Positions 10,921 to 58,459 of a stretch of 64,000 bases of DNA are shown here, one piece after another. The notes below the pieces were generated by a model. The model ran no database searches. It was not told the origin of the DNA and was given only the letters and a program-made list of their open reading frames with translations. The position numbers and the translations under genes are program-made. Within the stretch, counting starts at the first letter, position 1; the number at the start of each line of letters is the position of its first letter. Location: the IMG/VR virus record IMGVR_UViG_3300044680_000280, positions 124,001 to 188,000 of that record, one strand, 5' to 3'.

Positions 10921-11205
10921 CTACACCGTGGATGCTGAGACCTTCTCCAAAATCATAGCGAGCAACGGACCGATCTTCTCGAACTCGGTCCTCATGTCCT
11001 CCGAGACTTGTTTGAGGAGAGCAACATCCTCATTGGTCGAGGTCACAATCCGTTCGATAGAATCCAACCGACGAATGACACCGGCGAGGTCGTTGTCTAC
11101 CTCATCCACATGCCTGGTTACAAGCTCGAGTTTCGGAGCCACCGCGGCAACAACGGCGATCATAGTCTCTGAGTCTAGATTCTCGAATGTTGCTCTTGTA
11201 CCCAT
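10921..11205 (-). CDS. Hypothetical coiled-coil protein (94 aa)
   Basis: ATG overlaps the upstream TAA (TAATG coupling); heptad pattern. Confidence 0.6.
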   Translation of the reverse strand: MGTRATFENLDSETMIAVVAAVAPKLELVTRHVDEVDNDLAGVIRRLDSIERIVTSTNEDVALLKQVSEDMRTEFEKIGPLLAMILEKVSASTV

Positions 11206-12089
11206 TAGAACCCCACAAACTTTCGTGGACTCAATACACCACGTCCTGCATAGGGTCCGAAAGCGCTTCGAATACCCGTACCAAACTTAGGTTGCTGGAC
11301 ACCCTTGAGGATGTTGACGGTAGCTTTCGCCTTCTCAAGTTGCTGCGTGAAGTTCTCTTGAGCCGCCTGCTGGGCCGCCTCGTACTTCGAAGACTTGTCG
11401 AGGTTTAGGCTCACCCCGCCGATGGTATAGTCGAATTCATCGGCAACCCAATTGATACGAAGCGCCTGAAGGGCGAAGACCATCGCACCCGTCAGAAGCA
11501 AAGTGCGCCACTCAGGTTTCATCGCAACCATGGCGTCAACACTGGCAAACGGTGTCCTAGGGGGAGATGCGATGATCTCATCAAGGGACCGCTCAAGGTA
11601 TTCCTTAAGTTCGTTATTTTCCCAAATGAAGCCGAAGACTCGGCTAAACTGAGATATGGTCTCTTCGTGGGTCGGCGGACGAAAATGGTAATTGCGGTCA
11701 GGAGAGTTTGACACAAGCATACCAGACTTCTGAAGGATGAAATTGTGCCAACCTTCTGCCGTGAGATCATACATGTAGCGACGAGAAGAAAGTCTCTCTG
11801 TAGATAGAACCCGAACTGATGAAGAAGCACCGGCAACGACCGTTTGGGGACTCAGTGACTCCACCTCAGTCTTGAGTTTCGGGGTAAGAAACACACGATG
11901 ACCACCAGTCAGGACAGACGAGCCTTTCGTTGTATGTACCCTAAAAATAGGCTCTGACTCGACCTCTGCGCGCTGTACTTGGAGAACTCGCTTCCACTCC
12001 TGCACCCCGTTCGGGGACACGGATCGAACTCGCAAGGTCCCCGTGTAGAATGCGGACTTGATTCTCTCACTTTGCTGGGGAGTTAACAT
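11205..12089 (-). CDS. Split-intein C-precursor: IntC (aa 1-128) plus 166-aa C-extein of a probable head-tail adaptor/neck protein
   Basis: Block B VLTGGHRVF, block F MYDLTAEGWHNF, block G GMLVSN|S(+1). No block A. Has its own SD (AAAGGA, 5 nt before ATG). Confidence 0.88.
   Translation of the reverse strand: MLTPQQSERIKSAFYTGTLRVRSVSPNGVQEWKRVLQVQRAEVESEPIFRVHTTKGSSVLTGGHRVFLTPKLKTEVESLSPQTVVAGASSSVRVLSTERLSSRRYMYDLTAEGWHNFILQKSGMLVSNSPDRNYHFRPPTHEETISQFSRVFGFIWENNELKEYLERSLDEIIASPPRTPFASVDAMVAMKPEWRTLLLTGAMVFALQALRINWVADEFDYTIGGVSLNLDKSSKYEAAQQAAQENFTQQLEKAKATVNILKGVQQPKFGTGIRSAFGPYAGRGVLSPRKFVGF
11706..12089 (-). mobile_element. IntC fragment of an atypically split intein (128 aa)
   Basis: HINT blocks B, F and G; terminal Asn followed by Ser+1; penultimate Ser instead of His; no Cys in the fragment. 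Confidence 0.85.
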
Positions 12090-12345
12090 CGAAGTCCTTT
12101 TCCGTCCAGATCAAAAAGTCCCACCCCATACTGGCCGCATAGGAAGAAGCTGCCTCAAGTCGACGCTGCACGTTATGGTCCGTTGGGAGAGACAGCACCC
12201 AACTTGCTTTAACTTCAATGAGAGCAACGGTTCCATCCTGATGTGTCACAACAAAGTCTGGAAGCATCCAGCGACCGTCCGGAAGTTCTATTCGCGGTTC
12301 GAATACGTACTCTCTAACGGAGGGGTCCTGGTCTAATAAGGACAC
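12067..12345 (-). CDS. TnsA-N-like PD-(D/E)XK endonuclease (92 aa, possibly N-truncated)
   Basis: LLDQDPSVREYVFEP...LPDFVV...LIEVK...GWDFLIWTE matches the TnsA N-terminal / T4 gp4-like nuclease pattern. GTG start, no clear SD. Confidence 0.75.
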   Translation of the reverse strand: MSLLDQDPSVREYVFEPRIELPDGRWMLPDFVVTHQDGTVALIEVKASWVLSLPTDHNVQRRLEAASSYAASMGWDFLIWTEKDFDVNSPAK

Positions 12346-12362
12346 AACGACAAGGGATCAGT

Positions 12363-12860
12363 TCAGGATGTGCCGTGAATGGCTTCGTATAGGTCACGGA
12401 TAGATACTACCATATTCTCCCCACTCACGTCAACTTCTATCGTCTCCTCTTCACCTACACAATTGTCCCTAAGTAGAATACGGAGTCTCCGACCCATGTC
12501 CTGCTCCGCGGACGTTAGGGTCGGTTCAATCGAATCCGGGTTGACCTTGTCAATAACCGAAAAGTTCATGAGCACTTGCTGAATGGGCGCCCCCGGCATT
12601 TCACGAAACGTCCAGCGAATGCGATATTCTCCTAGATTTGCGTCCAAAGGAACGATAATGCTCGCAAAGTACTCCCCTAGCGATGGGTTGACGGGCTGAC
12701 GACGCGGAGCCCCAACGAGAACTTCGCGTCCCGTCGTAAAGTCGTAGAGAGCGTAGCTAATCTCGGCAGCGTTCTCGGGGGTTCCGTTGACGTTGTCGAG
12801 AAAAATGCTCAAGTCGTTACGACCGAGCTGCTGTCCCTTGTAAAAAGCGCTACCGCTCAT
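12363..12860 (-). CDS. Split-intein N-precursor: 133-aa N-extein (Ig-like structural domain) plus IntN (32 aa)
   Basis: Ends ...RILLRDN|CVGEEETIEVDVSGENMVVSIRDLYEAIHGTS*, an intein block A (Cys1...I-x-DL) followed by a stop. Confidence 0.82.
   Translation of the reverse strand: MSGSAFYKGQQLGRNDLSIFLDNVNGTPENAAEISYALYDFTTGREVLVGAPRRQPVNPSLGEYFASIIVPLDANLGEYRIRWTFREMPGAPIQQVLMNFSVIDKVNPDSIEPTLTSAEQDMGRRLRILLRDNCVGEEETIEVDVSGENMVVSIRDLYEAIHGTS
12366..12461 (-). mobile_element. IntN fragment of an atypically split intein (32 aa)
   Basis: Cys1 codon at 12461-12459; block A-like sequence; acidic composition complementary to the basic start of IntC. Confidence 0.8.
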
Positions 12861-13186
12861 TTGACCTCTTCGAGATCCTCCTGTGGCACAACGTGTCGAC
12901 CGTTCTTCTCGAGCTGTACATAGAACTTTCCAAACGGAATGTATTTCTCGATGGTACCCACGTCTCCGTGCCAGTGAGTTAAACCGTGAGAGGGCAGAAC
13001 CCTTACCCTCGTGCCTGGCTTCAGGCTAGACGGCACGCTCGCAACGCGAGCGACAACCTTCTTGACAATGAGGGCGTCCTGAAAATCTCGAAGTTCTCGA
13101 CTCATGGCCGTCTTTCCTTGGGACTTCCTCTTACTGGGAAGCCAATCCTCGTTTTCTGCGTCTAGGTGTATCTCAAGCTTGGCCAT
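12857..13186 (-). CDS. Small protein with C-terminal SH3/KOW-like domain (109 aa)
   Basis: Likely ATG at 13186 coupled to the ART stop (TAATG); LKPGTRVRV...GDVGTIEKY...FYVQL is an SH3-like barrel pattern. Confidence 0.6.
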   Translation of the reverse strand: MAKLEIHLDAENEDWLPSKRKSQGKTAMSRELRDFQDALIVKKVVARVASVPSSLKPGTRVRVLPSHGLTHWHGDVGTIEKYIPFGKFYVQLEKNGRHVVPQEDLEEVK

Positions 13187-14415
13187 TACTTCTTCTTTCC
13201 ACCACGTCCAACACACTTACCGTGTATGGCTGAAGCTCCCATCACAACCATCTCAGCCTCACCAGTATAATCTGTATTCGTTTTGGCTTTTGGGTTTGCA
13301 TCGGATCCCATGATCGGGGTCGTCAGATAGGACCAAAAGATATTTTCCACGGGAACCTTCATTTTGAAGGCGGTTCCAAAGCCGGTAGCTTGAGACGGGT
13401 CCGAGGAAAAGCTTGAAAGTTCCCTTGTCTTCACCACGAGGTCATCCCCCGGCTGAGCCTTATCGGCACCTTGCCCATTGACTCCCCTGAACAAGGTGAG
13501 TTCCTTCAATCCAAGATGCTTAAAAACAGCACGGTTGAATTTCAGAATCTCGTGGGCGTACTCTTTCATTGCTTGGTCCTTGGCACCCCTGGCCCGACCC
13601 TCTTTGGCGTCCGCCTCTTCCTTGGGAAGAGTGTAGCCCTCAACCCCGAGACTGCTCATGAGCCCATTGATCTCATCGGAGGGTGGTTGACCAGAAGAGT
13701 CCGTCCAGTCCATGACCAACCCATTATGGACCTTGTTCAACTTGGAATTGGACTTCAAATGCTTTTCAAAGTACTCCCCGATCATGTACCCGTTGACGTG
13801 GAGTAGCTTCTCAGCTTCAGACAACTGAGAGAAAGCCTCCTTAGCGACGGAGGGGGTGTCCTTGTCAGACCTGGCACCGAATTTCTTCTCGTATTCGGCA
13901 ACACCCTTCTTCATCTTCCCAATCACCTCATCCAAAGCCGCCTTGTGTTTGGAAAGGGTCTCATCTACTTCCTTGTCCGTAACGATGAGTTCCCCTTTTG
14001 GGGACATTCCAACAGACTTCTTGCTCTCCGTCCTTTTGCCATTGGACTTCGAAGGTTCGGTCTTGGGCTTCGAATCCGTGGACTTATCGGACTCTTCCTT
14101 AGGGGCTTCTCGAGGTATGGGGTCCCTCTTCTCAGGATTCTTCTTGGCCCACTCGTGGTACTCTTTGAGGGCCTTCCGAAAAACGTCTTTATCCTTGAGC
14201 GCCGTCGTAAAGGAGACATCCTTGAAACGGTCTCTGGTTTCTGGATTCGGATTGGGAACCTTTTCCGATCCGCCCTGATGGACCTTATCTAGCCACTCTT
14301 TCCACCGAGGCGGTACCCCACCCTTAGATGGATCCTCTTCCTGAGCGTCCGCGGTGCGGCCCAAGAATCGGGTCATAACTCTCAGAGCAATAGGGTTCAT
14401 TCGACTCAATCCCAT
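13186..14415 (-). CDS. ADP-ribosyltransferase-domain protein (R-S-E class)
   Basis: C-terminal TLFRGV (R), LSSFSSDP (SxS), GEAEMVV (ExE) in canonical order; charged low-complexity N-terminal half. Confidence 0.78.
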   Translation of the reverse strand: MGLSRMNPIALRVMTRFLGRTADAQEEDPSKGGVPPRWKEWLDKVHQGGSEKVPNPNPETRDRFKDVSFTTALKDKDVFRKALKEYHEWAKKNPEKRDPIPREAPKEESDKSTDSKPKTEPSKSNGKRTESKKSVGMSPKGELIVTDKEVDETLSKHKAALDEVIGKMKKGVAEYEKKFGARSDKDTPSVAKEAFSQLSEAEKLLHVNGYMIGEYFEKHLKSNSKLNKVHNGLVMDWTDSSGQPPSDEINGLMSSLGVEGYTLPKEEADAKEGRARGAKDQAMKEYAHEILKFNRAVFKHLGLKELTLFRGVNGQGADKAQPGDDLVVKTRELSSFSSDPSQATGFGTAFKMKVPVENIFWSYLTTPIMGSDANPKAKTNTDYTGEAEMVVMGASAIHGKCVGRGGKKK

Positions 14416-15803
14416 CCGTACTTAACTACCCGACAGGTCGGATCCCCTGGAATCGGTTTGGTCACGGCATCAACGACCTGAAACGGAAAATCTACCGTAG
14501 TGGGGGCACCCTGAAAGGTCACCTGATAGGACCACCTTATGAGCCAATTACCGGGTTGACCGTTCTCCCCCGACGTTCCCGTAGCGTAGTAAAGCCCCAC
14601 CTTCTGCATAACGGGGGACTTTGCGAATGGACCCGTCTGCATAATGAGCTGACCCCGAACCTGGTACATCGTGTAGCTCACGTTGTACGGAGAAATGGGA
14701 TTTCGAGAACGATCGAAGAGGCAGAGCATAAGATCCCCCCTCGTGAACATGTACCCCCAGCGAAACTGCTTGGTCAGACATGGATTGGTCTGAACATTCC
14801 CACCATCATCGGGGCACTTGCATCCGCCCCCGTGTGGATGGTATTCATCGTTACCGCCGCCACAATTACCGCTGTACGGATAACTGCCCTGACCGTACGG
14901 ATAATTTCCACCGCCCCCACAATCCCTACCCCGTCCAGGAGATAGTAATCGCCATCCCTCTTTGCGCTCCCAAATGTCTAGGTTCGTGTGACCGCACAAC
15001 CTCAACTGAGACCGCTCCCAGTTGTCAGGTAGCGTAGGTTCAGGGTTAGAACTGATGGGTGGGCAGACCGTAGTGACAAGAAGGAACGCGGCGCCACCAC
15101 CCTCTCCGAAGATCGGCATAGGAGCTGAATCCGCTGTCGTTGCAAATCCCAACGCTGAGCCACTCAAAAAATCGTAGGTGAAGAAGTTGGGCTCAGAGAC
15201 CGTAGCACCACCCGACGTAGATCCAGAGAGTAGAACTGCAATGTTGTCGAGAACGGTCGCCATGCCCCCGTCCCGCCCCGAAACGAGGGCAAGAAGATGG
15301 GGCACGGGTGTCGATAGGGTAGCAACCCCTCCGTCTCGACCAGTCTCACGGTAGACCGTATGCGGGGGAATAACTCCAGTGGCAACAATGACCGCCGAAC
15401 CGGCCAAGAGGGCGGTCACAGTGTCCGTTCGAAACGTAGACCCTCCCTGCAACGTAAGGATGACCCCACAGTCGACTCCAGACGCGGTGAATGTTGACTC
15501 GCTTGCTATCTCCGAAGCAACGCCGTCAGACACGAACACGGATTCACCGAACATGTCGGAAACAGCACCAACGTTCACGCGAGGCGTCAACGAGGAGTTT
15601 GCTGATGGGGAGGAGGAGACGGTATATTGAGCTGAAGCGTTGAACGCAATCGTAGCGCTTCCAGACGCAACAGAACCAGCCGCATAGTGCGCCTTTGGAA
15701 TATGACCGAATGACGAAGCTCCGGCCAGGTCCGTCGCTACGAAGTACCTCTCCGTGACAAACGAATCCGCGACGATATTCGCACTAGCGGACATCAGAGG
15801 CAT
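14406..15803 (-). CDS. Virion structural protein (465 aa) with C-terminal Ig-like domain
   Basis: Ala/Ser/Thr-rich N-terminus, Gly/Cys-rich linker, and a C-terminal domain resembling the N-extein at 12462-12860. Confidence 0.6.
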   Translation of the reverse strand: MPLMSASANIVADSFVTERYFVATDLAGASSFGHIPKAHYAAGSVASGSATIAFNASAQYTVSSSPSANSSLTPRVNVGAVSDMFGESVFVSDGVASEIASESTFTASGVDCGVILTLQGGSTFRTDTVTALLAGSAVIVATGVIPPHTVYRETGRDGGVATLSTPVPHLLALVSGRDGGMATVLDNIAVLLSGSTSGGATVSEPNFFTYDFLSGSALGFATTADSAPMPIFGEGGGAAFLLVTTVCPPISSNPEPTLPDNWERSQLRLCGHTNLDIWERKEGWRLLSPGRGRDCGGGGNYPYGQGSYPYSGNCGGGNDEYHPHGGGCKCPDDGGNVQTNPCLTKQFRWGYMFTRGDLMLCLFDRSRNPISPYNVSYTMYQVRGQLIMQTGPFAKSPVMQKVGLYYATGTSGENGQPGNWLIRWSYQVTFQGAPTTVDFPFQVVDAVTKPIPGDPTCRVVKYGWD

Positions 15804-15806
15804 AGA

Positions 15807-16190
15807 TTAGGCCTCAGTGATTTGCAACTGCCCCGCTGGGAAGGAAACTTGCGTAGATGCTAGAACGGTCCTCGGGGCTCCAAGGGCGCCGTAGTAGAGC
15901 AGGTTACCGCCCGACACGTTGTCCACGATACCCCATGCGACAATCGTACCCCAGGTAGCTGAAGCGGTAGGGAACAAGATGTCCGCAACGTTGGATACAA
16001 CTCCTTCACTCGCAGACGTCCAGGTAACTGCTTGACGCGCGTACGATCCACCAGAAACCTCAACACCGGCAGAAGTCGGAGTCGGAGAAGTCGTATAGAT
16101 AGCAACGTATACGGCGGGGGGCGACTCATACGAAACGTCGTTCAGCACCGCGTTGAGCATAACGTTGTCGAGGTACTGGCTCTTGGGCAT
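15807..16190 (-). CDS. Small tail-fibre-associated protein, paralog of 16878-17270
   Basis: YLDNVMLNAVL...VYVAIYTT...EVSGGSYARQAVTW pattern seen in phage minor tail proteins. Confidence 0.65.
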   Translation of the reverse strand: MPKSQYLDNVMLNAVLNDVSYESPPAVYVAIYTTSPTPTSAGVEVSGGSYARQAVTWTSASEGVVSNVADILFPTASATWGTIVAWGIVDNVSGGNLLYYGALGAPRTVLASTQVSFPAGQLQITEA

Positions 16191-16877: not shown

Positions 16878-17270
16878 TTATGCTTCTGTGACGCTGAGTG
16901 CACTCGCAGCGAAGGACATCGTATCGCCGATTCCGATGGTCTTGGCGGTCGTGAGGTTACCGAAGTACAGGATGTTGCCGCTCGTCGAAGCGTCGAGAAT
17001 GGCAACGGCAACGACTGAACCGACCGCCGTTGCGGCGCCGGAACCGAAGAAGCTCAGAACACCGGTGTTCGAGGTCGAACCGCCCGAAGGAGTGCTGAAG
17101 GTTGCCGCCTGGCGGGAGTAGTTCGCATCCGAAACTTCTGTGCCGCTCGTAGATGGCGTAGGGGCTGTCGTGTAGAGCGCCACGTAGACCGTCGTAGGAG
17201 AGGTGTACGAAACGTCCGTAAGGACGGCGGCGAGGACCTTATCGTCGAGGTAAATGGATTTGGCAGCCAT
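16878..17270 (-). CDS. Small tail-fibre-associated protein, paralog of 15807-16190
   Basis: YLDDKVLAAVL...VYVALYTT...EVSDANYSRQAATF; aligns end to end with its paralog. Confidence 0.65.
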   Translation of the reverse strand: MAAKSIYLDDKVLAAVLTDVSYTSPTTVYVALYTTAPTPSTSGTEVSDANYSRQAATFSTPSGGSTSNTGVLSFFGSGAATAVGSVVAVAILDASTSGNILYFGNLTTAKTIGIGDTMSFAASALSVTEA

Positions 17271-40950: not shown

Positions 40951-41022
40951 GGGGAGTTAGTTTAACGGGCAAAACACAAGGCTGACACCCCTGCAATACG
41001 GGTTCGATTCCCGTACTCTCCA
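40951..41022 (+). tRNA. tRNA with anticodon GAC (Val-decoding) and G3:U70 acceptor stem; no encoded CCA
   Basis: Acceptor GGGGAGT/ACTCTCC+A73; D-stem GTTT/AAAC; anticodon stem CAAGG/CCCTG (one A:C mismatch) with loop CTGACAC; T-arm ACGGG-TTCGATT-CCCGT. Confidence 0.85.
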
Positions 41023-41045
41023 CACCCACAGATTTAAATGAAAAT

Positions 41046-44187: not shown

Positions 44188-45681
44188 TCACGACCCCAAA
44201 TCAAAGAGTCGTCCCTTATCAGTAAAGGACACCTTCTCTTCGGACGTGAGGTCACGGCCCAAAACGTTTCGACAGGCTGTCAGGAATGCGTCCGTATCCT
44301 TATACGGGCGCATTCCGTTAACAGCGAGTACCGTCGAATAGACTCGTGACTCACCGGCCTTGAAGGACCTTTTCGTCATGAGATCGATTTGACGGGAGAC
44401 TGCAAGTAACTCACGACCACTGAACGAGCCCGTCTTTACGAGGGAAGCCCATCCACCGTTCTTGTGCAAAATCAAGCCCCAAAGGACCTTTTTCGCAATA
44501 GAAACGTCGCGTGTTGAAGCTAGGACACTCTTCGCAATAGCGCGCCATTGAGAACTCTGGAGGGAGGACTTGATGATCGACTCGTTCTCTCGATTCTCAT
44601 CGAGTCCGAGATTGGACACTTCGTCCTTAGAGATCTCGTCACGCACCTTCTTAACGACGTGGTCACGAATCGTGTTCGCCAGATCGTCGACCGCCTTCGA
44701 AAGCGGACTGGCCTCGGGCTTCTTGTCCTCTTCCTTGGGGGTTGATTCTTGGGGGTCCGTGCCAAAGTCCTCCGAGAGAACCCTACGAACATGTTCCGGG
44801 ACGATCAATCGAGCCGCCTTCGACATAATGCCGTTGTCGTTCGCGCGAATGGGTTGTGAGAACGCAAAGGACATTTTGCCCTGCAAGTTCTCAATGTCCC
44901 CTGCCGTTAGGATGCTTCGAAGTACTGCCCCGGTGAATGCGGGATTCGCAACCCAAGAAGCCTCGATGAATCGAACCGAACCCGGTTCCTCCGTCACGTG
45001 ACCGCAGAGCTCAGCGATCTTACGCTTCTTACCGAAGCTATCGTAGAAATCGGAGCCCTTGAAGTACTTGACGTGAGGGCAAAGTTGAGTCTCATCGTAC
45101 GCGACATTGCCGCATTTCGTGCAGAGCGTGAACTGAACCTGGCAACCCATGGATAGGGTCTTCAAAGTTCCGTCAGAGATGGCTTTGACGAGAGGCTTGT
45201 GTTTGCGATCCGTTGCTACGAGGATGTCTACGTAAATGGAGTCGCCGATGTCACGAGCCGCACTGTCAATGATTTTGCCCTTAGAGAGCTCCGGGATCTG
45301 AATGTGCTCAACGTAGTTTTCTCCGCCCGTGAAGGTGCGGAACGATGCCATGAGGAGCTTGCGTTCCCAGCAATCGTTGTTGTTGTTGATGTACTTGAGC
45401 GTGCCCGGCGTGACGTGCCAGTCGGCGTATTTTCGATCGATCTGAAAGTTCTCAACAACCATCTTGCCGAGGGGCTGGTCGACTTGCTCCGTGTCAACTG
45501 AAGCAATGATGGTGCAGTGCGATAGTAAGTATTGCTTCGGGTCGTACTTGTCTAGAACGACCTTCGACGCATTGCGTACGTTAAAGGTGGTTTCGGTAGC
45601 TCGCGAACGGATCTCATCCCAACCAGCGAAGGTAATCGCTGGTTTGACGAGAGCTGCATTGGCGAACTTATTAAAAGCCAC
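44188..45681 (-). CDS. Prohead (capsid maturation) protease with zinc-finger insertion
   Basis: NYVEH (His), LSMGC (Ser nucleophile), CTKCG...CPH Zn motif, EASWVANPAF; position before the scaffold. Confidence 0.78.
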   Translation of the reverse strand: MAFNKFANAALVKPAITFAGWDEIRSRATETTFNVRNASKVVLDKYDPKQYLLSHCTIIASVDTEQVDQPLGKMVVENFQIDRKYADWHVTPGTLKYINNNNDCWERKLLMASFRTFTGGENYVEHIQIPELSKGKIIDSAARDIGDSIYVDILVATDRKHKPLVKAISDGTLKTLSMGCQVQFTLCTKCGNVAYDETQLCPHVKYFKGSDFYDSFGKKRKIAELCGHVTEEPGSVRFIEASWVANPAFTGAVLRSILTAGDIENLQGKMSFAFSQPIRANDNGIMSKAARLIVPEHVRRVLSEDFGTDPQESTPKEEDKKPEASPLSKAVDDLANTIRDHVVKKVRDEISKDEVSNLGLDENRENESIIKSSLQSSQWRAIAKSVLASTRDVSIAKKVLWGLILHKNGGWASLVKTGSFSGRELLAVSRQIDLMTKRSFKAGESRVYSTVLAVNGMRPYKDTDAFLTACRNVLGRDLTSEEKVSFTDKGRLFDLGS

Positions 45682-47236: not shown

Positions 47237-50200
47237 TCAGCCGAGCTTCTTGATCGTCTCGAGAAGAGGCTGGTAGGCCGCTCGGAGCTGGGGATTTGCA
47301 TGTGCAAGTCGAATGACGGCGGAACGAAGACCGTGGTAGGCAGCGTCCTTCTGCTGGCTCTGACCGTCTTCCTTCTTCTCTTCCTTGCCGTCTTCCTTCT
47401 TCTTCATGTGCTCGAGAAACTGGGGAGGAACCTGTCCGCCCTGCTTCTGGTCTTGCTGAGCCGGTTCCTGGCCTTCTTCCTGAGCAATCTTGTCAGAGAG
47501 CTCAACGAGGTCGTACGCAAGAGCGGGATTCGAGGCGTACTTCACGGCGAGCTGTCGAATGCGAGCGGCGGTCTTCATGGGCTTTTCCTCTCCTGACGGA
47601 GGAGCATAAGGGGATTTGGAACTTGATTTCACTTTGTGGATTCGATGTGTGTACTCGAGACTGCCCGAAGCGCCGGGCGGGGTTGACTTGATCCGATGCT
47701 CAAGCTCATGAGGGCCCATGCCCTCTTCATTGAGCTTTTTTGCATCTTTGGGGTCGTACCCATTCTCTTTGAGAATTTTCTCGAGTTCGGAAAGCTCGTT
47801 AGGATGAGCTGAAGCAATAGCGACCGTAATCGGTCCTTTGATGTTGCTTCGATCCGTCAGCAGAGTGTCCGTCTGCGAGTGGCCGCCCAACTTTGCGAGG
47901 AGCATATTGTAAAGCGGGGGTTGCAACCCGACGGAATACTTGCCATTTTCGCAAGAGCGAAGGGCTAAATCGAGAGCTGCCCTGAGCTGGGTGTCTCGAT
48001 AAATGCCATCGATCGCGGAGGACAGAACAGGAGCCTTCAACCATTCTCGAGCGGACTTCAGAATCGTGTCAAAGTCCTTGTCTCCGAGGTCTCGCTGATG
48101 CACTTGCCCCCAACCCACATATGGAGCGAAGCCCTCATGTCCTTTGGGGTACGGCTCGACACCCCAATAGACGGCCTGCTTCGCCCTCTCGGCAACTCGA
48201 GATACGGAATCACCCATCGTTCTGATGGGCTTACAAATAGAATGTTTGCGTGAACGATCAACGACGGACCAAAGAAGATGGGCGGTCTTGTCTGTGTTGG
48301 CTACTCCCATCTGACGACGGTAGCGGTCAAATAGCTCATTCTTGTTCTTCTTGAGGTCTTCCTTGCTACCACGCGATTGCAGATAGCCTTCCGGTCGACG
48401 CGGGGGCTCAGGAAAAGAGGACTCTCCTTTTTCTCGATAGGGGTCCTTCTTCTGTTTCTTAGCCTGTTCCTTCTCGTACTTCTTATGCTGAAATTCCCAG
48501 CGTTTCAAACTATCCTCGTAGTCGTCATACTCCTGCTCCTGAACGAGCTTTTTGACGAATGGGAACTTCTCGGGAGCGAGGGTTCGAATCTTCTCAACCA
48601 CTCGTTCCCGAAGGCTCTCCTTAGCTGGAACGAGATCTCGCATATTTTCAGGATATTCCTTGGCCCGTTCGTCGAAGAATTCTCCCATGCGACGAACCTT
48701 GTTGGCAATGTCGCGCGGAGTCTGGTGTTCCGAGATGGCATCGGGTGAGTCGGGGTCCAGAAAATCGTGTCGAGCACTGAGATAATCCGCCGCCTGAGAC
48801 CACCCGACGGCTATTTGTTGGGCGGCCGGGTCCCCGTCAAAGTGCTTCAGTAGTTTACCAATCTGCTTCACCGTGCCCAAAGAGGGGGGCGGGGGCAGAT
48901 CCTCATCGAGCTCCGGATCGTATTCTTCCCCCTCTTGCTTAGCCCTCTCCTCGTGCTTTTCGATCAGCTTGTCTCGCTTGGCCTGCCAGCGAGCATAACG
49001 ATCGGTATCTTCGCCCATGATGCCACGCTTAACTGCATCGGCGAAAATGTGCTTGGCGCTTTCCTTGGCTCTAGCTAGGTGGTCCTCTTCCGTCTCTCCA
49101 GGCCTACGACCGAGGGTTGTGTCCGCAATGGCGCCCAGGAGTTCTCTTGGGGCTCCCGTCTTTTTCTCAAGCCGGTCAACTTCCTGCTCCCTTGCCGCAA
49201 GGGACATCGCAACAACGAACATCTGATGTTTCTGGAGAGCGGCGGCCTGCTCTTTGGGGTGAAGTTTCGCGAACGGAACCTCTTGTCCCGTACTATCCAC
49301 GCCAACACTTGGAGGACGAACTTTCGATGGATCGGTCTCGTAACCGGTCTCCTTTACGAGGTCAGTGAGCTCACCGTCCTTAGCGTGAAGCTTTGCTGTA
49401 TTGTAATTTTCGACCAGATCCCTCACGTCATCGGGGTGCAGGTCCATGTCGCGAAATTTTGCGGCCACCTCAACAGGAAAGTTCTCAATGAGTTGCCTGG
49501 TTGCCTTATCTTTTTCCGCCTCTGTCACCTTTCGACGTGGAATCTTCGGCGCAGGTTTGTGGATCTCGTGAGCCGCATCAATGAGGTCTCCGACCGTTCT
49601 AACCCCCTTAGGAAGGTCGAGATTTTTCAACTCGGGAATCGACTTTTTGAGGTCGACGTACCTAGCGTGTTCTCCGAGTTTCTTCTCAAGGGACTCAGAT
49701 AGCTCGCTATCGGGATTCGAAAGGTCTTTCAGAAGATTCGAGAAGTGGGGATCCTTCTCGGCCATCTCCTTGAGGGGTTGGAGATTCGCCTGTAGGTTCT
49801 GCTCTTCTTCAAAGCGCTCCTTCCAGGAATACTTCTCCTCATCGGAAAGCCGATCGAACGGCACATGCTTTCGACGCTTCTCGTCGAAAAATAAGGGGTT
49901 CCCGTCATCGTCCTCCGAGGTACTGTACTCTTTGGACGCCCACTCTTTGAATTCAGGGGTTTCGTGAATCTTAGACTTTAGGAATTCGTCAACCTCGGCC
50001 TTATCGTCTGGATGCATCTCCTCTCGAGGGGATACTCCGAGGGCCTTCTGGACAGTCTCGACCAGCTTGTTGACAGCATCTTCCGACCTATCCTCATCCC
50101 TGGGTTTTGGCTCTTTTTTCTCGGGTTCGGGCTTGGTCGCCTGAAGGGCGTCAACGAGATCCCCGACACTCTTTACCCCTGACGGAAGACCAGAAACGCT

Positions 50201-51118
50201 TTTCGATATGTCCTCAGCGGGATTGATCGTATTTCGGAGCTGATAAAGGGAGTTCGGGTCCTGACCGTCGATTTGATGAACAACAGTCTTGAGGGCTGGA
50301 TCCTTCTCGGCCAACTCGCGAATCTGCTGACCCGCATCGGAAACCGCCTTCTGTTTCTCAGGACTGACTTGCGACTCAGGCGCCTTAGGCCCTTCCTGCT
50401 TTTTCTCGGCCGGTGCAACCTTCTGAGAGGGCTTGCCGTGGGGGGCACTTTTCGCCCCGTGAATTGCCTTACGAACGTCACCAATGGTCTTGAATTTGAA
50501 CTTCTCGAGAACAGGGAACTTCTTTAGAAGTCCAGCTTTTTCCAGGGGGAAATCGTTCGGAAACCCACCCAACGACTTAGGATCTTTGGAGAAGAGGCTC
50601 TTGGCAAAGGACTCCAGGTAGGGGTCCTCCTTCATCTCATCGCCGAAATCGGCGTAGAGTTGCTTGTTATCCTCGTGAGGTGGGGCACTCTCGGGCTTGG
50701 GCTCTTCTGGTGAGTGAGGCTTGGGCACCTCTGGCGCCGAGCCAGAGTCCGACTTCTCCTCCCCTTCGGGTTCTACCTTCTCGTACTCGGATCCCTTCTC
50801 TTTTAGGGTATCCTTGTTGACGTAGCCCACCCACCCAGTATCCTTGTGCCGAACTTTGACCTTGTTGGTGATGTCCAACTCATCCGCCTGACGTTGTAAC
50901 CACCGGTTCACAACCCGTCCGCCAACAGATCCTCCGATGTCCTTCCGGTTCATCGAGAGGTCCTTGTCGGGCTTCGAATCGGGGTCCTTGTCGGGCTCGA
51001 TGAGCTCTCGGCGCTTGTCATGCCGAGGCGGCTTGACCTTAGGAGCAGGACGTACAAGGCGCTCGGCCTCATCGTTCTCCCGCTCAAAGTGGTCCTTGGT
51101 GGCGCGACGATCACCCAT
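47237..51118 (-). CDS. Large charged protein (1293 aa), candidate internal head/ejection protein
   Basis: E/K/D/P-rich; immediately downstream of the portal; multiple K/R-x-A motifs. Confidence 0.65.
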   Translation of the reverse strand: MGDRRATKDHFERENDEAERLVRPAPKVKPPRHDKRRELIEPDKDPDSKPDKDLSMNRKDIGGSVGGRVVNRWLQRQADELDITNKVKVRHKDTGWVGYVNKDTLKEKGSEYEKVEPEGEEKSDSGSAPEVPKPHSPEEPKPESAPPHEDNKQLYADFGDEMKEDPYLESFAKSLFSKDPKSLGGFPNDFPLEKAGLLKKFPVLEKFKFKTIGDVRKAIHGAKSAPHGKPSQKVAPAEKKQEGPKAPESQVSPEKQKAVSDAGQQIRELAEKDPALKTVVHQIDGQDPNSLYQLRNTINPAEDISKSVSGLPSGVKSVGDLVDALQATKPEPEKKEPKPRDEDRSEDAVNKLVETVQKALGVSPREEMHPDDKAEVDEFLKSKIHETPEFKEWASKEYSTSEDDDGNPLFFDEKRRKHVPFDRLSDEEKYSWKERFEEEQNLQANLQPLKEMAEKDPHFSNLLKDLSNPDSELSESLEKKLGEHARYVDLKKSIPELKNLDLPKGVRTVGDLIDAAHEIHKPAPKIPRRKVTEAEKDKATRQLIENFPVEVAAKFRDMDLHPDDVRDLVENYNTAKLHAKDGELTDLVKETGYETDPSKVRPPSVGVDSTGQEVPFAKLHPKEQAAALQKHQMFVVAMSLAAREQEVDRLEKKTGAPRELLGAIADTTLGRRPGETEEDHLARAKESAKHIFADAVKRGIMGEDTDRYARWQAKRDKLIEKHEERAKQEGEEYDPELDEDLPPPPSLGTVKQIGKLLKHFDGDPAAQQIAVGWSQAADYLSARHDFLDPDSPDAISEHQTPRDIANKVRRMGEFFDERAKEYPENMRDLVPAKESLRERVVEKIRTLAPEKFPFVKKLVQEQEYDDYEDSLKRWEFQHKKYEKEQAKKQKKDPYREKGESSFPEPPRRPEGYLQSRGSKEDLKKNKNELFDRYRRQMGVANTDKTAHLLWSVVDRSRKHSICKPIRTMGDSVSRVAERAKQAVYWGVEPYPKGHEGFAPYVGWGQVHQRDLGDKDFDTILKSAREWLKAPVLSSAIDGIYRDTQLRAALDLALRSCENGKYSVGLQPPLYNMLLAKLGGHSQTDTLLTDRSNIKGPITVAIASAHPNELSELEKILKENGYDPKDAKKLNEEGMGPHELEHRIKSTPPGASGSLEYTHRIHKVKSSSKSPYAPPSGEEKPMKTAARIRQLAVKYASNPALAYDLVELSDKIAQEEGQEPAQQDQKQGGQVPPQFLEHMKKKEDGKEEKKEDGQSQQKDAAYHGLRSAVIRLAHANPQLRAAYQPLLETIKKLG

Positions 51119-51154: not shown

Positions 51155-52987
51155 TTATCCGAATCGGTTGTCCGGCGGGGCCGCTTCCTCTTCCTTGATC
51201 TTGAGACCCAGGTACTCGGCAATCTTCTTGGTGACATCGCTCTTTTCAGCCAACGACTGACCAACCGCACTATACAGACCACGAGACATCTCGGTGAATA
51301 TCGCGTCATTGACCGTGAACATGTCATTCTTGATCTTCCGAGCCGTGTCGTCCGGATCGATATTGAACATCTCGAGAATGAGGTCGATCGAGATCGAACC
51401 CTTCTGGTAGAGGTTGAAGAGAGCGTCGTAGGTGTCCTGCGAGTCGCGGAGCGGCAAACGAGTGAAGGAAAGACGGGGGTACAGGATGACTTCTTCGCCC
51501 CACTTATCCTTCTCAACGAATCCCTTGCGACGGGCAACGGGTTTGAACAAGTACTCTTCGACGTATTCTTGGATCATCTCTCGAAGGAATAGGTATCGCT
51601 GATTGATGACCTCGAGCTTCAAGCGGTCGCCAGAGTACAGGGTCTCACCAGAAAGCAAGGATTCCGTAACGCCTAGACCCGTGCGTAGACGACGTTCTGT
51701 TTGCTCGTATTCAGCCGAAAGGTCGAGAAGACGGTCTTTAGACCCCATTTCCTCCCAGTGAACCTCATAGTTGGCAATGATAGAGTAGTCAGGATCGACA
51801 AGGGACAAGTCGACCTGCTCTCGGAGGTCATCAGCATCGGCGTCAGAGATGTCCTCCGCCCAAACGATGCGCTTAGGAGTCATCGCACGGTCGGCAATCT
51901 GAGTTTGAGCCTGACGAAGTTTTTCACGATAATACAGAGTTCGAAGACACCGATCCAGAATACTCTGCCCCAGCTCCTCGCCCGCCTGCTTGCGGCTCGA
52001 GAGCATGTACACGAAGCTTCCTTCGTCGGGATCCGTGCCAAGAGGAATGAGGCGCCCCTGCCCGATGTACTCACGTACTTCCTCGGGCATCTCTTGGACC
52101 ATCTCCTCAGCGACGGGATCTCCTAGTTTGGCTTCCTCCAACAAGGCACGATCTCGCTCTGACGGAATGAGCTCAACACGAACCTTATCCGAAAAGGAGA
52201 ACGTTTTGACTTCGACCTGATCGATCGGAAAGATGATGAGACGATCCCACCCTTGGTAGTGCTTCTGGTAGTAGGAGAGTTCCTCTTCCTCTCGGTTGTC
52301 TTTTTCGATGTATCCTTTTTCGAGAACTTCTTTCGCCTCGCCGTCCTCCATAAGAACGTTCTTCGGAACCGTCTGTTCGCGATAACCAACGTCGGGCGGA
52401 ACTTGAACGTCGGAATCTTCAGCAAAAATAGGGCAAGTACCGTCCAACCATAGGTGGTGAACTGCCATAATGAGCTTCTGAAAGAGTTTGACCTTCTTCG
52501 TCATTCTCTCAAAGAAGCTGAGAATGTACTTGCCATAGTCCTCAGCACTTTCGAATCCCTTCGGAAACGTACGAGGTTTGGGTGCTGCAAGGCGTACCTT
52601 CGAGAGCGGGAGTTCTGTATGAAGGTCGATCGCTTGCGCTACGATCTCATCCGTATTGTAGAAGTGTCGGTAGATCTCCCGCTTTTCCCGAATCGATTGC
52701 GGAAGCTGAAGAAAGTCTGTCGATAGTTGCGGAGAAAAGAACGAGCTGGAGCCCGACTGTACCGTGTTGGCGCCCATCACGGGATCGATGGCAAAGGCGG
52801 AGGACTTGTTACGATAACTCCCCATCTGGCGAGCTTGCTCCCTCGCCATCCGCTCCTTGGCGGTCAACGGTTGCATCTTGTTCCCGTACGGCTGCGAGAC
52901 ATACGGACGGTTTCTGGCTGGCGCCGAGGGCACCACCAGTCCACCACGTACATTCGTGACGTTCGTGAACTTACTACCTAGGGGCAT
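51155..52987 (-). CDS. Portal protein (610 aa)
   Basis: Position downstream of TerL; portal-like helices (IVAQAIDLH, SILDRCLRTL, TGLGVTESLLSGE, LSFTRLPLRD). Confidence 0.85.
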   Translation of the reverse strand: MPLGSKFTNVTNVRGGLVVPSAPARNRPYVSQPYGNKMQPLTAKERMAREQARQMGSYRNKSSAFAIDPVMGANTVQSGSSSFFSPQLSTDFLQLPQSIREKREIYRHFYNTDEIVAQAIDLHTELPLSKVRLAAPKPRTFPKGFESAEDYGKYILSFFERMTKKVKLFQKLIMAVHHLWLDGTCPIFAEDSDVQVPPDVGYREQTVPKNVLMEDGEAKEVLEKGYIEKDNREEEELSYYQKHYQGWDRLIIFPIDQVEVKTFSFSDKVRVELIPSERDRALLEEAKLGDPVAEEMVQEMPEEVREYIGQGRLIPLGTDPDEGSFVYMLSSRKQAGEELGQSILDRCLRTLYYREKLRQAQTQIADRAMTPKRIVWAEDISDADADDLREQVDLSLVDPDYSIIANYEVHWEEMGSKDRLLDLSAEYEQTERRLRTGLGVTESLLSGETLYSGDRLKLEVINQRYLFLREMIQEYVEEYLFKPVARRKGFVEKDKWGEEVILYPRLSFTRLPLRDSQDTYDALFNLYQKGSISIDLILEMFNIDPDDTARKIKNDMFTVNDAIFTEMSRGLYSAVGQSLAEKSDVTKKIAEYLGLKIKEEEAAPPDNRFG

Positions 52988-58087: not shown

Positions 58088-58459
58088 CTACCGATCTGAC
58101 CGTACCCCCTCAGTCCTAATGAGGTACTGGGATAGATTGTAAACAGTATCGTAGCCCCGATCCTTGGGAACGGATCGATCAATAGCCTTTTGCATGTCAT
58201 TTCCCGTCTCAACGAGGTTGAGAACGCCGGCGTGATTTGGCGTGAGGTTAAACACATCCTTGGGCTGAATATCGCGGCGATTCATCTCCGCATCTTCAAG
58301 CATGGTCTCACCATTTTCCCGCACGATCTCACGAGAAATGCCACGAGGGGCATTTACGGGCTTCGTCAGCTTTTTCGCGTGCTGACGAGCTCCGGGAGGC
58401 TGATCGGCCACCCTCTGAAAGCGTGCGGCGACCTTGAGCGCGATCAAGGTGTCGGTCAT
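58088..58459 (-). CDS. Hypothetical protein (123 aa) with leader LIALKVAARFQRVAD
   Basis: ATG; leader resembles that of the ART protein. Confidence 0.65.
   Translation of the reverse strand: MTDTLIALKVAARFQRVADQPPGARQHAKKLTKPVNAPRGISREIVRENGETMLEDAEMNRRDIQPKDVFNLTPNHAGVLNLVETGNDMQKAIDRSVPKDRGYDTVYNLSQYLIRTEGVRSDR

Follow-up and report, generated by a model that had tools for sequence, protein, structure and literature searches.

A putative huge-phage ADP-ribosyltransferase with a shared address peptide and a coupled partner predicted to plug its active site

We analysed a gene for a predicted ADP-ribosyltransferase (ART) and its translationally coupled downstream neighbour on a 64,000-nucleotide stretch of viral DNA (the window), which corresponds to bases 124001-188000 of one 406,734-bp virus record (IMG/VR IMGVR_UViG_3300044680_000280, here G000). 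The protein is very probably an ADP-ribosyltransferase of the R-S-ExE type. Its partner opens with a conserved 19-residue peptide that is predicted to lie on the catalytic cleft, and both proteins carry a short motif, the leader of the ART, which recurs in further proteins of the same phage and with high probability is a functional shared address. We propose that the ART, the partner acting as a plug and the leader acting as a head-loading signal belong to one system in which the enzyme is delivered with the phage DNA, and we give this proposal an even chance of being right. We infer that the enzyme is active, that it acts on arginine, that the plug inhibits it, and that it is packaged, injected and directed at a host protein.

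The open reading frame (ORF) of the ART, at 13186-14415 on the minus strand, is intact and open throughout. Its parts, with positions in the window, are as follows.

13186..14415, minus strand: ART gene, 409 amino acids (aa) from the ATG at 14415, stop codon TAA at 13188-13186
14347..14400, minus strand: leader, residues 6-23 (M-N-P-I-A-L-R-V-M-T-R-F...A-D), from the family profile and genome matches
14128..14325, minus strand: small alpha/beta N-terminal domain (N-domain), residues 31-96, from the family consensus; predicted local distance difference test score (pLDDT) 94-96
13999..14127, minus strand: predicted disordered linker, residues 97-139, rich in Lys, Glu, Ser and Pro; pLDDT 40-45
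13189..13998, minus strand: predicted helical lobe and ART catalytic core, residues 140-409; pLDDT 91.3, predicted template modelling score (pTM) 0.90; ART fold matches and DRAT match (E 3.3e-4)
13486..13488, minus strand: R310 codon; the residue is the R of R-S-E and lies on strand beta-1 (LFRG, residues 308-311)
13405..13416, minus strand: codons of S334-S335-F336-S337, the STS-like motif (SSFSS, residues 334-338)
13252..13260, minus strand: codons of E386-A387-E388, the ExE motif (GAG GCT GAG)

The database gene call for this protein begins at the second ATG, at 14400, and gives 404 aa starting with M-N-P-I-A-L-R-V (P0002, 100% identical). We regard ATG 14400 as the likelier start compared to ATG 14415. 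The gene upstream ends at 14406, and a start at 14400 sets the leader three residues past the Met, matching the other leader proteins. The stop codon of the upstream gene (14406-15803, minus strand, 465 aa), which lies directly next to the ART gene, overlaps the first ATG of the ART ORF. The middle segment of its product is rich in Gly, Cys and Tyr, and no Pfam, PHROGs or NCBIfam family matched it.

The initial annotation had read three catalytic motifs at the C-terminus (R in LFRG, SxS in SSFSS and ExE in EAE), an N-terminal leader and a charged flexible region, and all of these readings held. A word search returned 26 relatives of the ART, chiefly on contigs of 50-550 kb, and R310, G311, R331, S334, S335, E386 and E388 are invariant in 22/22 full-length relatives that were aligned. 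Since the R-S-ExE triad is invariant across these 22 proteins, it is not a chance match. The leader is conserved in the family and is directly followed by an acidic stretch, ahead of the N-domain, whose ~60 residues form the best-conserved stretch of the alignment consensus. No known family or fold was found for the N-domain, and a structure search of the Atlas gave no usable match for it. The charged region is also real (residues ~97-139, pLDDT < 50), and its length differs among the relatives. A tblastn search of 50,697 deposited phage genomes with the ART gave no match, PHROGs and NCBIfam returned nothing for the ART or its partner, and sequence searches of the PDB yielded chance matches only, whether the ART itself or the profile of its family was used. 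The protein represents an uncharacterised ART family which is confined to huge phages and has distant cousins on MuF head proteins.

Structure prediction had been suggested as a check on the enzyme class, and it returned an ART fold. The full-length AlphaFold model reached a mean pLDDT of 84.5, with the leader and residues 97-139 disordered, and the isolated domain (residues 140-409) folded confidently without the plug peptide. In the domain model, R310 lies on the first core strand, S-S-F-S on the strand 333-337, and E386/E388 at the start of strand beta-5, after which a hydrophobic strand (388-392) follows. VIA-align, a search independent of Foldseek, was run against 48,161 representative PDB chains, and the best 10 matches were all ARTs (Z 4.4-5.2, root-mean-square deviation (rmsd) 4.7-6.2 Å over 148-170 residues). 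The best match was Vis (Z 5.2, rmsd 6.2 Å, 170 residues), followed by the Listeria ART-ARH toxin (5.1), CPILE-a (4.9), Certhrax (4.8), C2-I (4.8), C3bot2 (4.6), C3larvin (4.6), VIP2 (4.5) and C3stau2 (4.4). Nearly all Foldseek matches were ARTs as well, with a best E-value of 0.026, which is weak. The low absolute Z-scores imply that the protein is a divergent member of the ART fold, but because the top matches are all ARTs and the triad is invariant, there is little doubt about the fold class.

The sole Pfam match of the ART protein was DRAT (PF07357; 20.4 bits, E 3.3e-4, gathering cutoff 25 bits), covering residues 302-361 only. Precomputed PF07357 matches exist for 12 homologs, and one distant relative (L029) reaches 33 bits, above the cutoff. 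From its sequence, the ART therefore appears related to the DRAT family rather than a clear member of it, and we place it on a DRAT-like branch of the R-S-ExE clade that has not been described before. It is predicted to be an active enzyme, probably an arginine-specific mono-ADP-ribosyltransferase, and the ExE chemistry suggests arginine on a protein as the acceptor (PMC8120803). An Alt-like identity had also been proposed for this protein. No match to PF03496 (Alt/VIP2, ADPrib_exo_Tox) was found in the ART at E <= 1 or genome-wide at E <= 0.1, while T4 Alt itself matches PF03496 with E 5.8e-36, and hhalign gave a probability of 0.9% between the ART family alignment and T4 Alt. With neither comparison in its favour, membership in the Alt/VIP2 family was rejected, and the protein resembles Alt in its predicted chemistry.

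The gene downstream of the ART had been described as a translationally coupled, SH3-like neighbour and possible partner. Coupling is evident from the overlap of the ART stop codon and the partner start codon (TAATG at 13188-13184), with a purine-rich stretch immediately upstream. The partner has the following parts.

12857..13186, minus strand: partner gene (109 aa), whose ATG overlaps the ART stop codon at base 13186
13130..13186, minus strand: plug peptide, partner residues 1-19, with invariant N12-E13-D14-W15; conserved and predicted to lie on the ART active-site cleft
13037..13084, minus strand: leader-like motif, residues 35-50 (K-K-V-V-A-R-V), from the leader motif search
12860..13036, minus strand: KOW/SH3-like beta-barrel, residues 51-109, from structure matches

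The SH3-like description applies to the C-terminal 60 residues of the partner, whose barrel reached template modelling (TM) scores of 0.76-0.87 to KOW, KIN17-SH3 and YorP-like clusters, in matches to Atlas predicted models only. A programmed -1 frameshift joining the ART and the partner was considered as well, given that the two are fused in relatives; it is unsupported, with no X-XXY-YYZ slippery site before TAATG.

A word search with the 109-aa partner returned only the query itself, and its relatives were identified by gene position instead of similarity. In the aligned partner sequences N-E-D-W is invariant (7/7). Four relatives (P0010, P0015, P0023 and L020) have the opening segment joined in frame onto the C-terminus of the ART, and in all the close relatives that were inspected (L011, L001, L002, L012, L013 and L022) the directly downstream gene, which overlaps by 1-4 nt, opens with it; in L002 this is an uncalled ORF. 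In close relatives the segment comprises two alternating hydrophobic positions, an Asp and then the invariant N-E-D-W. It is followed by a Lys-rich linker and usually by a copy of the leader motif, after which the sequences diverge: the partner ends there in L001, L002 and L022, with the motif at its C-terminus, and elsewhere continues into an HExxH protein (L013), another domain (L003, L011) or the barrel found in the window. Across a wider set, ~16/19 phage loci, MuF head-protein fusions among them, have an N-x-D-W-[LI] peptide either at the start of the gene directly downstream of the ART domain or fused to that domain. The variants downstream of distant small-phage ARTs read NDSWL, NDNDWL, TADWI, NLNWL, NSDWT, NSDWL, NEDWI and NEDWL, and one such ART has a fused variant, DMNWL. 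As a background, the loose plug motif occurs within the first 45 residues of 0.6% of the ORFs of this genome, and the strict motif occurs once in the whole genome.

One gene structure among the relatives is unusual. In L013 (11143-12441) the plug ORF (N-E-D-W, linker, leader and HExxH protein) begins within the annotated 3' end of the ART gene but in a different frame, and the odd Pro/Arg-rich C-terminal tail of the database protein P0016 is probably out-of-frame read-on or an assembly frameshift.

Co-folding of the ART with the partner gave a median interaction score (ipSAE) of 0.70 over three runs (0.70, 0.50 and 0.76), compared to 0.00 for the best of three controls. In calibration, an ipSAE of 0.70 was reached by 58/80 solved complexes and 2/110 mismatched pairs, a rough guide here since our own alignments were used. 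The partner had a pLDDT of at least 63, and contacts agreed between runs to at least 52%. On the partner side, the predicted interface comprises residues 1-19 only, and the KOW/SH3-like domain is not in contact. On the ART side it comprises residues 238-242, 261-266, 310-331, 334-337, 342, 346 and 384-388, which takes in R310, S334/335/337 and E386/388. The contact pairs with the lowest error join W15 to 310-313/346, D14 to S335 and 240-242, E13 to the invariant R331, and L16 to E386/E388, and the first residues of the partner are predicted as an extra strand beside ART residues 325-331. The fusions, the conserved adjacency and the controlled co-fold thus support the prediction that the coupled neighbour is a partner of the ART, as had been suggested, although the modelled contact runs through residues 1-19 and not through the SH3-like domain. 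Binding through the N-E-D-W peptide is probable on the basis of the model. That this binding inhibits the ART, as an immunity-like plug of the active site, is somewhat more probable than the converse.

The leader is not confined to the ART, and at least 14 proteins of the 406,734-bp genome carry it. Ten N-termini could be aligned to the motif M-D-x-L-A-L-R-V-A-x-R-F/Y, in which V and the second R are invariant; the family consensus is L-A-L-R-V-A-A-R-F, and the window ART reads I-A-L-R-V-M-T-R-F. When the genome was searched with a profile of the ART family N-terminus, the matches to further ORFs fell exactly on their N-termini. A search for the core [RK]-V-[AV]-x-[RQ]-[aromatic/aliphatic] found it 20 times in 527 non-overlapping ORFs, compared to 3.2 +/- 1.9 in composition-preserving shuffles (n = 300), and 9 proteins carry it within their first 20 residues, compared to 0.32 +/- 0.55 in the same shuffles (at most 3 in any one of them). 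With a profile built from the 10 N-termini, 14 sites were returned for this genome, and a complete 512-kb relative, which is independent of it, gave 9. The motif was also found in neighbours of ART homologs (L001, L002, L003, L011, L012, L013, L020 and L021). Some copies are tandem, some are internal, and in the small partners they are C-terminal. Tunturi_5 and LR745208, which are relatives by their portal, showed no enrichment of the leader, and its profile had 0 matches in the ClpX-encoding giant phages Atu_ph07 and phage G. Besides a J-domain protein and four HExxH proteins, the bearers include the following.

G000:C1 214971-215861 (L007), minus strand: second ART, of the polyvalent-protein type, with leader; PF18760 at 38 bits, above the cutoff
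G000:C1 122011-122976 (L006), minus strand: topoisomerase IB with leader, ~1 kb before the window; PF01028 E 2.4e-28
58088..58459 of the window, minus strand: 123-aa leader-bearing ORF (L-I-A-L-K-V-A-A-R-F...A-D), from the leader profile
47237..51118 of the window, minus strand: 1293-aa charged protein directly downstream of the portal, with the leader core R-V-V-N-R-W-L-Q-R-Q-A-D-E close to the N-terminus

That the leader could be a Tat or Sec signal was rejected upon inspection, which revealed no twin arginine, no hydrophobic h-region and an acidic stretch after the motif. A different peptide, S-F-x-G-D-R-S-A-A-G-R-Y-A-A-x-x-R-W-x-G, heads successive effector modules in small phage contigs with distant ART-domain relatives, five times within 6.6 kb (L032:1039-6600) and twice in L023 (3587-4800). 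It looks like an analogous "address" of another phage lineage.

In the mechanism that we propose, the ART and its coupled partner would be made together in the producing cell. Residues 1-19 of the partner, a beta-strand followed by N-E-D-W, would dock on the edge strand and reach into the NAD/substrate cleft, and the plug would keep the ART silent in the producing cell in an immunity-like manner. The address motif, of which the partner bears a second copy, marks a set of effector-like proteins, at least 14 in this 400-kb phage, and could act as a trafficking signal, the role that MuF plays for the ART-plus-plug cassette in small phages. It would bring them into the head for delivery with the DNA, perhaps aided by the phage ClpX, and the delivered ART would modify a host protein early in infection. 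Further, we tentatively suggest, at a chance of about one in three, a more general arrangement in a clade of 300-550-kb phages: a ~12-residue peptide at the termini of at least 14 enzymes would direct them to one receiver, either the capsid interior or a ClpX that loads or times them, with the ART plugged in trans and the plug bearing the same address.

For the address itself, two destinations were weighed. Head packaging and injection is a possible destination, to which we assign a little less than an even chance. Tethering to ClpX is also possible, at a chance nearer to one in three than to one in two. The two are not mutually exclusive, and we rank packaging slightly above the tether, by a small margin and with ClpX possibly as a helper. 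Distant ART-domain relatives occur as C-terminal domains of MuF head proteins, with the plug peptide downstream (L024, L033), and also on NUDIX/PAP2 or GNAT polyvalent-type fusions in small phages (L025, L032). In the logic of polymorphic toxins, the variable N-terminal module is the trafficking part. The internal proteins of T4, and also Alt, use N-terminal capsid-targeting peptides of 10-20 residues (PMC5694885). Published examples exist of ARTs packaged in the head and of MuF toxins followed by a small immunity ORF (PMC9503650, PMC5512222, PMC5576092), and ARTs together with zincin-like domains are a staple of those proteins for which injection along with the phage DNA is predicted (PMC5512222, PMC9503650). 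We also counted for packaging that the leader is common to at least 14 effector-like proteins, that the ART here lies within a virion-gene block and that a portal-adjacent protein carries the motif.

Several observations weigh against delivery from the head. In most relatives, as read from their gene order, the ART sits among genes for nucleotide metabolism or ClpX rather than virion genes: it is found in a nucleotide-metabolism setting in L002, L003, L013, L020 and the P0011 contig, and in L002, L003, L020 and the P0011 contig it stands beside CN_hydrolase and ClpX, with thymidylate synthase, DHFR and nucleotidase genes around it. The relatives have the ART and plug between CN_hydrolase and ClpX, with CN_hydrolase translationally coupled to the ART, and because their ART lies in this cluster, the virion-block position in the window is derived and not conserved. 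The leader is also found internally and C-terminally, and for the leader-bearing J-domain protein there is no obvious reason for injection. No consistent protease-type cleavage motif follows the leaders (A-D-E is a feature of the ART family, not of the other bearers), and a prohead-protease cleavage site could not be defined. The sequence of the leader resembles the XB peptide of SspB, a binder of the ClpX N-domain, and ClpX co-occurs with the leader in 5/5 ART-bearing records, compared to 0/2 leader-poor portal relatives. Additional reservations concern the enzyme and the plug: the structural Z-scores of the ART model are low (~5) and its Foldseek matches weak, the DRAT score of the window protein falls below the Pfam cutoff, the co-fold is a model built on a shallow 7-row partner alignment, and occupancy of the cleft could mean a cofactor or a structural strand instead of an inhibitor.

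The ClpX observations lead to another reading, which we hold to be less likely than not but by some distance the strongest competitor. It keeps the same enzyme and plug, and takes the leader as an SspB-XB-like tether to the N-terminal zinc-finger domain of the phage ClpX. The ART and the other leader proteins would then be cytoplasmic clients of ClpX, working with host ClpP, and ClpX would either time their removal or strip off and degrade the plug and thereby switch the ART on. The minimal partners, consisting of plug, Lys-rich linker and C-terminal leader motif, would be SspB-like adaptors. The XB peptide R-G-G-R-P-A-L-R-V-V-K binds the ClpX N-domain, and the I-A-L-R-V core of the leader can be set beside its P-A-L-R-V-V-K (PMC3983244). 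The phage ClpX retains a C4 zinc finger (PF06689), the GYVG pore loop and an L-G-F loop where IGF is expected. Its gene stands between leader genes, in a cluster outside the window:

G000:C1 21500-28000 (L004): CN_hydrolase, small leader ORF, ClpX, three leader ORFs (one HExxH) and DUF1848

In L002, L003 and L020, ClpX adjoins the ART. ClpX is present in all five ART/leader megaphage records and in neither of the two portal relatives without leader enrichment. The motif is located at extreme N- or C-termini, often in tandem, and the ART of the relatives stays among early-type nucleotide-metabolism genes; all of this speaks for the tether. On the other hand, the resemblance to XB extends over 4-6 residues only and was noticed after the fact, a search of the genome for a phage ClpP found none, and Atu_ph07 and phage G encode ClpX without any leader match. 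In the complete relative G003, most leader genes lie ~150-200 kb from its ClpX-like gene, and MuF head proteins of small phages carry the same ART-plus-plug cassette. A tether would moreover be compatible with packaging, as ClpX could assist loading; the role of jumbo-phage ClpX as a packaging helper is so far speculation (PMC7824862).

Concerning the plug, N-E-D-W could instead be a structural or activating element, a detached C-terminal strand and loop that completes the active site, with the other end of the partner serving localisation. Several relatives have the peptide as a fusion at the C-terminus of the ART, and the strand that its first residues are predicted to add beside ART 325-331 would suit such a role. 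ARTs that need protein cofactors include ExoS and cholera toxin. DraT likewise requires a partner protein (PMC8120803). But the predicted contacts fall on the NAD-binding and catalytic residues R310, S334/335/337 and E386/388, which is occlusion-like, and since they do, we favour an inhibitor or immunity role over a helper. Occlusion is the commonest immunity mechanism, with the prophage ART Bxa and its inhibitor Bsi as a precedent (PMC11699363), and MuF toxins are typically trailed by small ORFs (PMC5576092). The ART domain alone also folds confidently without the peptide, and we regard the activating role as improbable. Least probable of all, and hardly to be expected, is the initial annotation taken at its word: a homolog of T4 Alt that is packaged in the head by means of an N-terminal propeptide and whose neighbour interacts with it through the SH3-like domain. 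This would agree with the R-S-ExE chemistry, the N-terminal leader, the virion-gene block in the window and the presence of C2/C3/VIP2-type ARTs (PF03496, shared with Alt) among the best structural matches. It is contradicted by the family comparisons with PF03496 and Alt given above, by a predicted interface limited to neighbour residues 1-19, and by the absence or replacement of the SH3-like domain in relatives.

The virus that encodes the ART is a huge phage of an uncultivated clade, as the nearest deposited relatives of its portal indicate: an uncultured phage of 485 kb with 50.6% identity, Tunturi_5 with 36.8%, which is a 309-kb phage of Tunturiibacter (Acidobacteriota), and Bacillus phage G. 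IMG/VR lists G000 as a "provirus" with an estimated completeness of 85%. Despite this label, the record is a 407-kb run of phage-like genes, and the label may be a trimming artefact. The ART protein is also present with 100% identity on a 463,523-bp contig, and the relatives G003 and G004 are complete, with direct terminal repeats (512,571 and 435,218 bp).

Nearly all long ORFs of the window are on the minus strand. The initial annotation had placed the ART inside a neck cluster. This is weakly borne out: the co-directional block around the gene holds Gp80-like fibre, tail-fibre, portal and prohead-protease-like genes, and the two ORFs immediately downstream have PHROG "connector" matches (E 8.8e-7 and 0.002), but among the PHROG and other family matches of the window genes there was no firm neck protein.

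51155-52987, in the minus-strand gene block of the window: portal gene
44188-45681: prohead-protease-like gene, phrog_18299 E 4e-10

Other genes of the window were noted in passing. A paralogous pair of Gp80-like "fiber I" genes (PF23140 E 1.3e-39, phrog_240) is found at 15807-16190 and 16878-17270 on the minus strand, with a 134-aa ORF between them. A single tRNA-Val (GAC) lies at 40951-41023 on the plus strand, within the otherwise minus-strand block. The region 11205-12860 (minus strand) resembles a "fractured" virion gene with an atypically split intein, whose pieces are read separately. ORF 12363-12860 has an intein block-A-like segment at its end (D-N|C-V-G-E-E-E-T-I-E-V), ORF 12067-12345 is a free-standing TnsA_N-like endonuclease (PF08722 E 4.6e-9), and ORF 11205-12089 starts with block B (T-G-G-H-R-V-F), has an Intein_splicing C-end (E 3.4e-6, V-S-N|S) and continues into a C-extein with a weak head-tail connector match.

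The locus bears on how giant uncultivated phages sort and silence ARTs. Phage ARTs that are delivered with DNA, such as T4 Alt, MuF toxins and polyvalent proteins, are a recognised theme (PMC9503650, PMC5512222, PMC5576092), and both these and toxin-immunity gene pairs are already known kinds. In the literature that was searched, we found no description of this ART family with its N-domain, of the N-x-D-W plug spanning MuF phages to megaphages, or of an address on an effector set with a link to ClpX. A 19-residue peptide predicted to cap R, S and ExE would be a compact, transferable ART inhibitor and would explain why the genes are welded or fused. From its sequence alone, the address motif marks out the probable effectors of a 400-kb phage and ties them either to head packaging or to a ClpX that the phage encodes. 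If the more general arrangement holds, toxin and antidote travel on one label, the label is a portable protein-delivery tag of giant phages, and the plug is a new and widespread peptide-type ART inhibitor. Deciding between packaging and ClpX would also show what giant-phage ClpX homologs do, a question so far left to speculation.

Compared to known systems, the protein shares with T4 Alt that it is a predicted phage R-S-ExE mono-ART of the C2/C3/VIP2-like fold class, with a short N-terminal peptide common to other proteins of its own phage. It differs in having no detectable sequence relationship and another N-terminal architecture; the leader here is arginine-rich, ~12 residues long and unlike that of T4, and a dedicated putative plug protein is encoded downstream. 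Packaging and processing are established properties of Alt, while the system described here is known from its genes alone. The T4-type capsid-targeted internal proteins likewise resemble it in the short N-terminal peptide that several proteins of the phage have in common. SspB XB and ClpX (PMC3983244) share the A-L-R-V core at a flexible terminus, the small partners built of a linker and a terminal peptide, and a co-occurring zinc-finger ClpX; the copies here are mostly N-terminal and extended to A-x-R-F/Y, and their binding to ClpX is putative.

The MuF toxins and Bxa with Bsi/BAH (PMC5576092, PMC11699363) also combine a phage ART with a small co-directional ORF, which here is modelled in the active site. 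In contrast to the MuF toxins, and to the L024 and L033 relatives which have MuF, the ART of the window has no MuF domain (PF04233/PF06152) and a short leader in its place. Unlike in Bxa/Bsi/BAH, the partner is predicted to bind through a conserved peptide, its 19 N-terminal residues, and it has a copy of the leader motif as well. Next to the ART gene no ADP-ribosylhydrolase was seen, although no search of the genome was aimed at one. Tri1 inhibits by an N-terminal extension inserted in the active site and is also a hydrolase. The Tre1-Tri1 and TreX-TriX pairs (PDB 6DRH/6DRE, 8S2M) contain R-S-E ARTs that are among our structural matches; they are bacterial toxins delivered by a type VI secretion system or Rhs and have globular immunity proteins, whereas the present pair belongs to a phage and would rely on a short linear peptide.

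Among Pfam families, that of DraT (PF07357) alone matches the core of the ART, in the R and S motifs, and DraT is an Arg-specific ExE enzyme, as the ART is predicted to be; the phage context without nitrogenase or DraG, the different N-terminal domains and the sub-cutoff score set the two apart. The polyvalent proteins found in phages and in conjugative elements (PMC5512222) share the repertoire of ART-PolyVal and zincin-like HExxH domains as well as the predicted delivery with DNA. There, the domains are joined on one giant polypeptide, while here they are separate proteins, each with its own leader.

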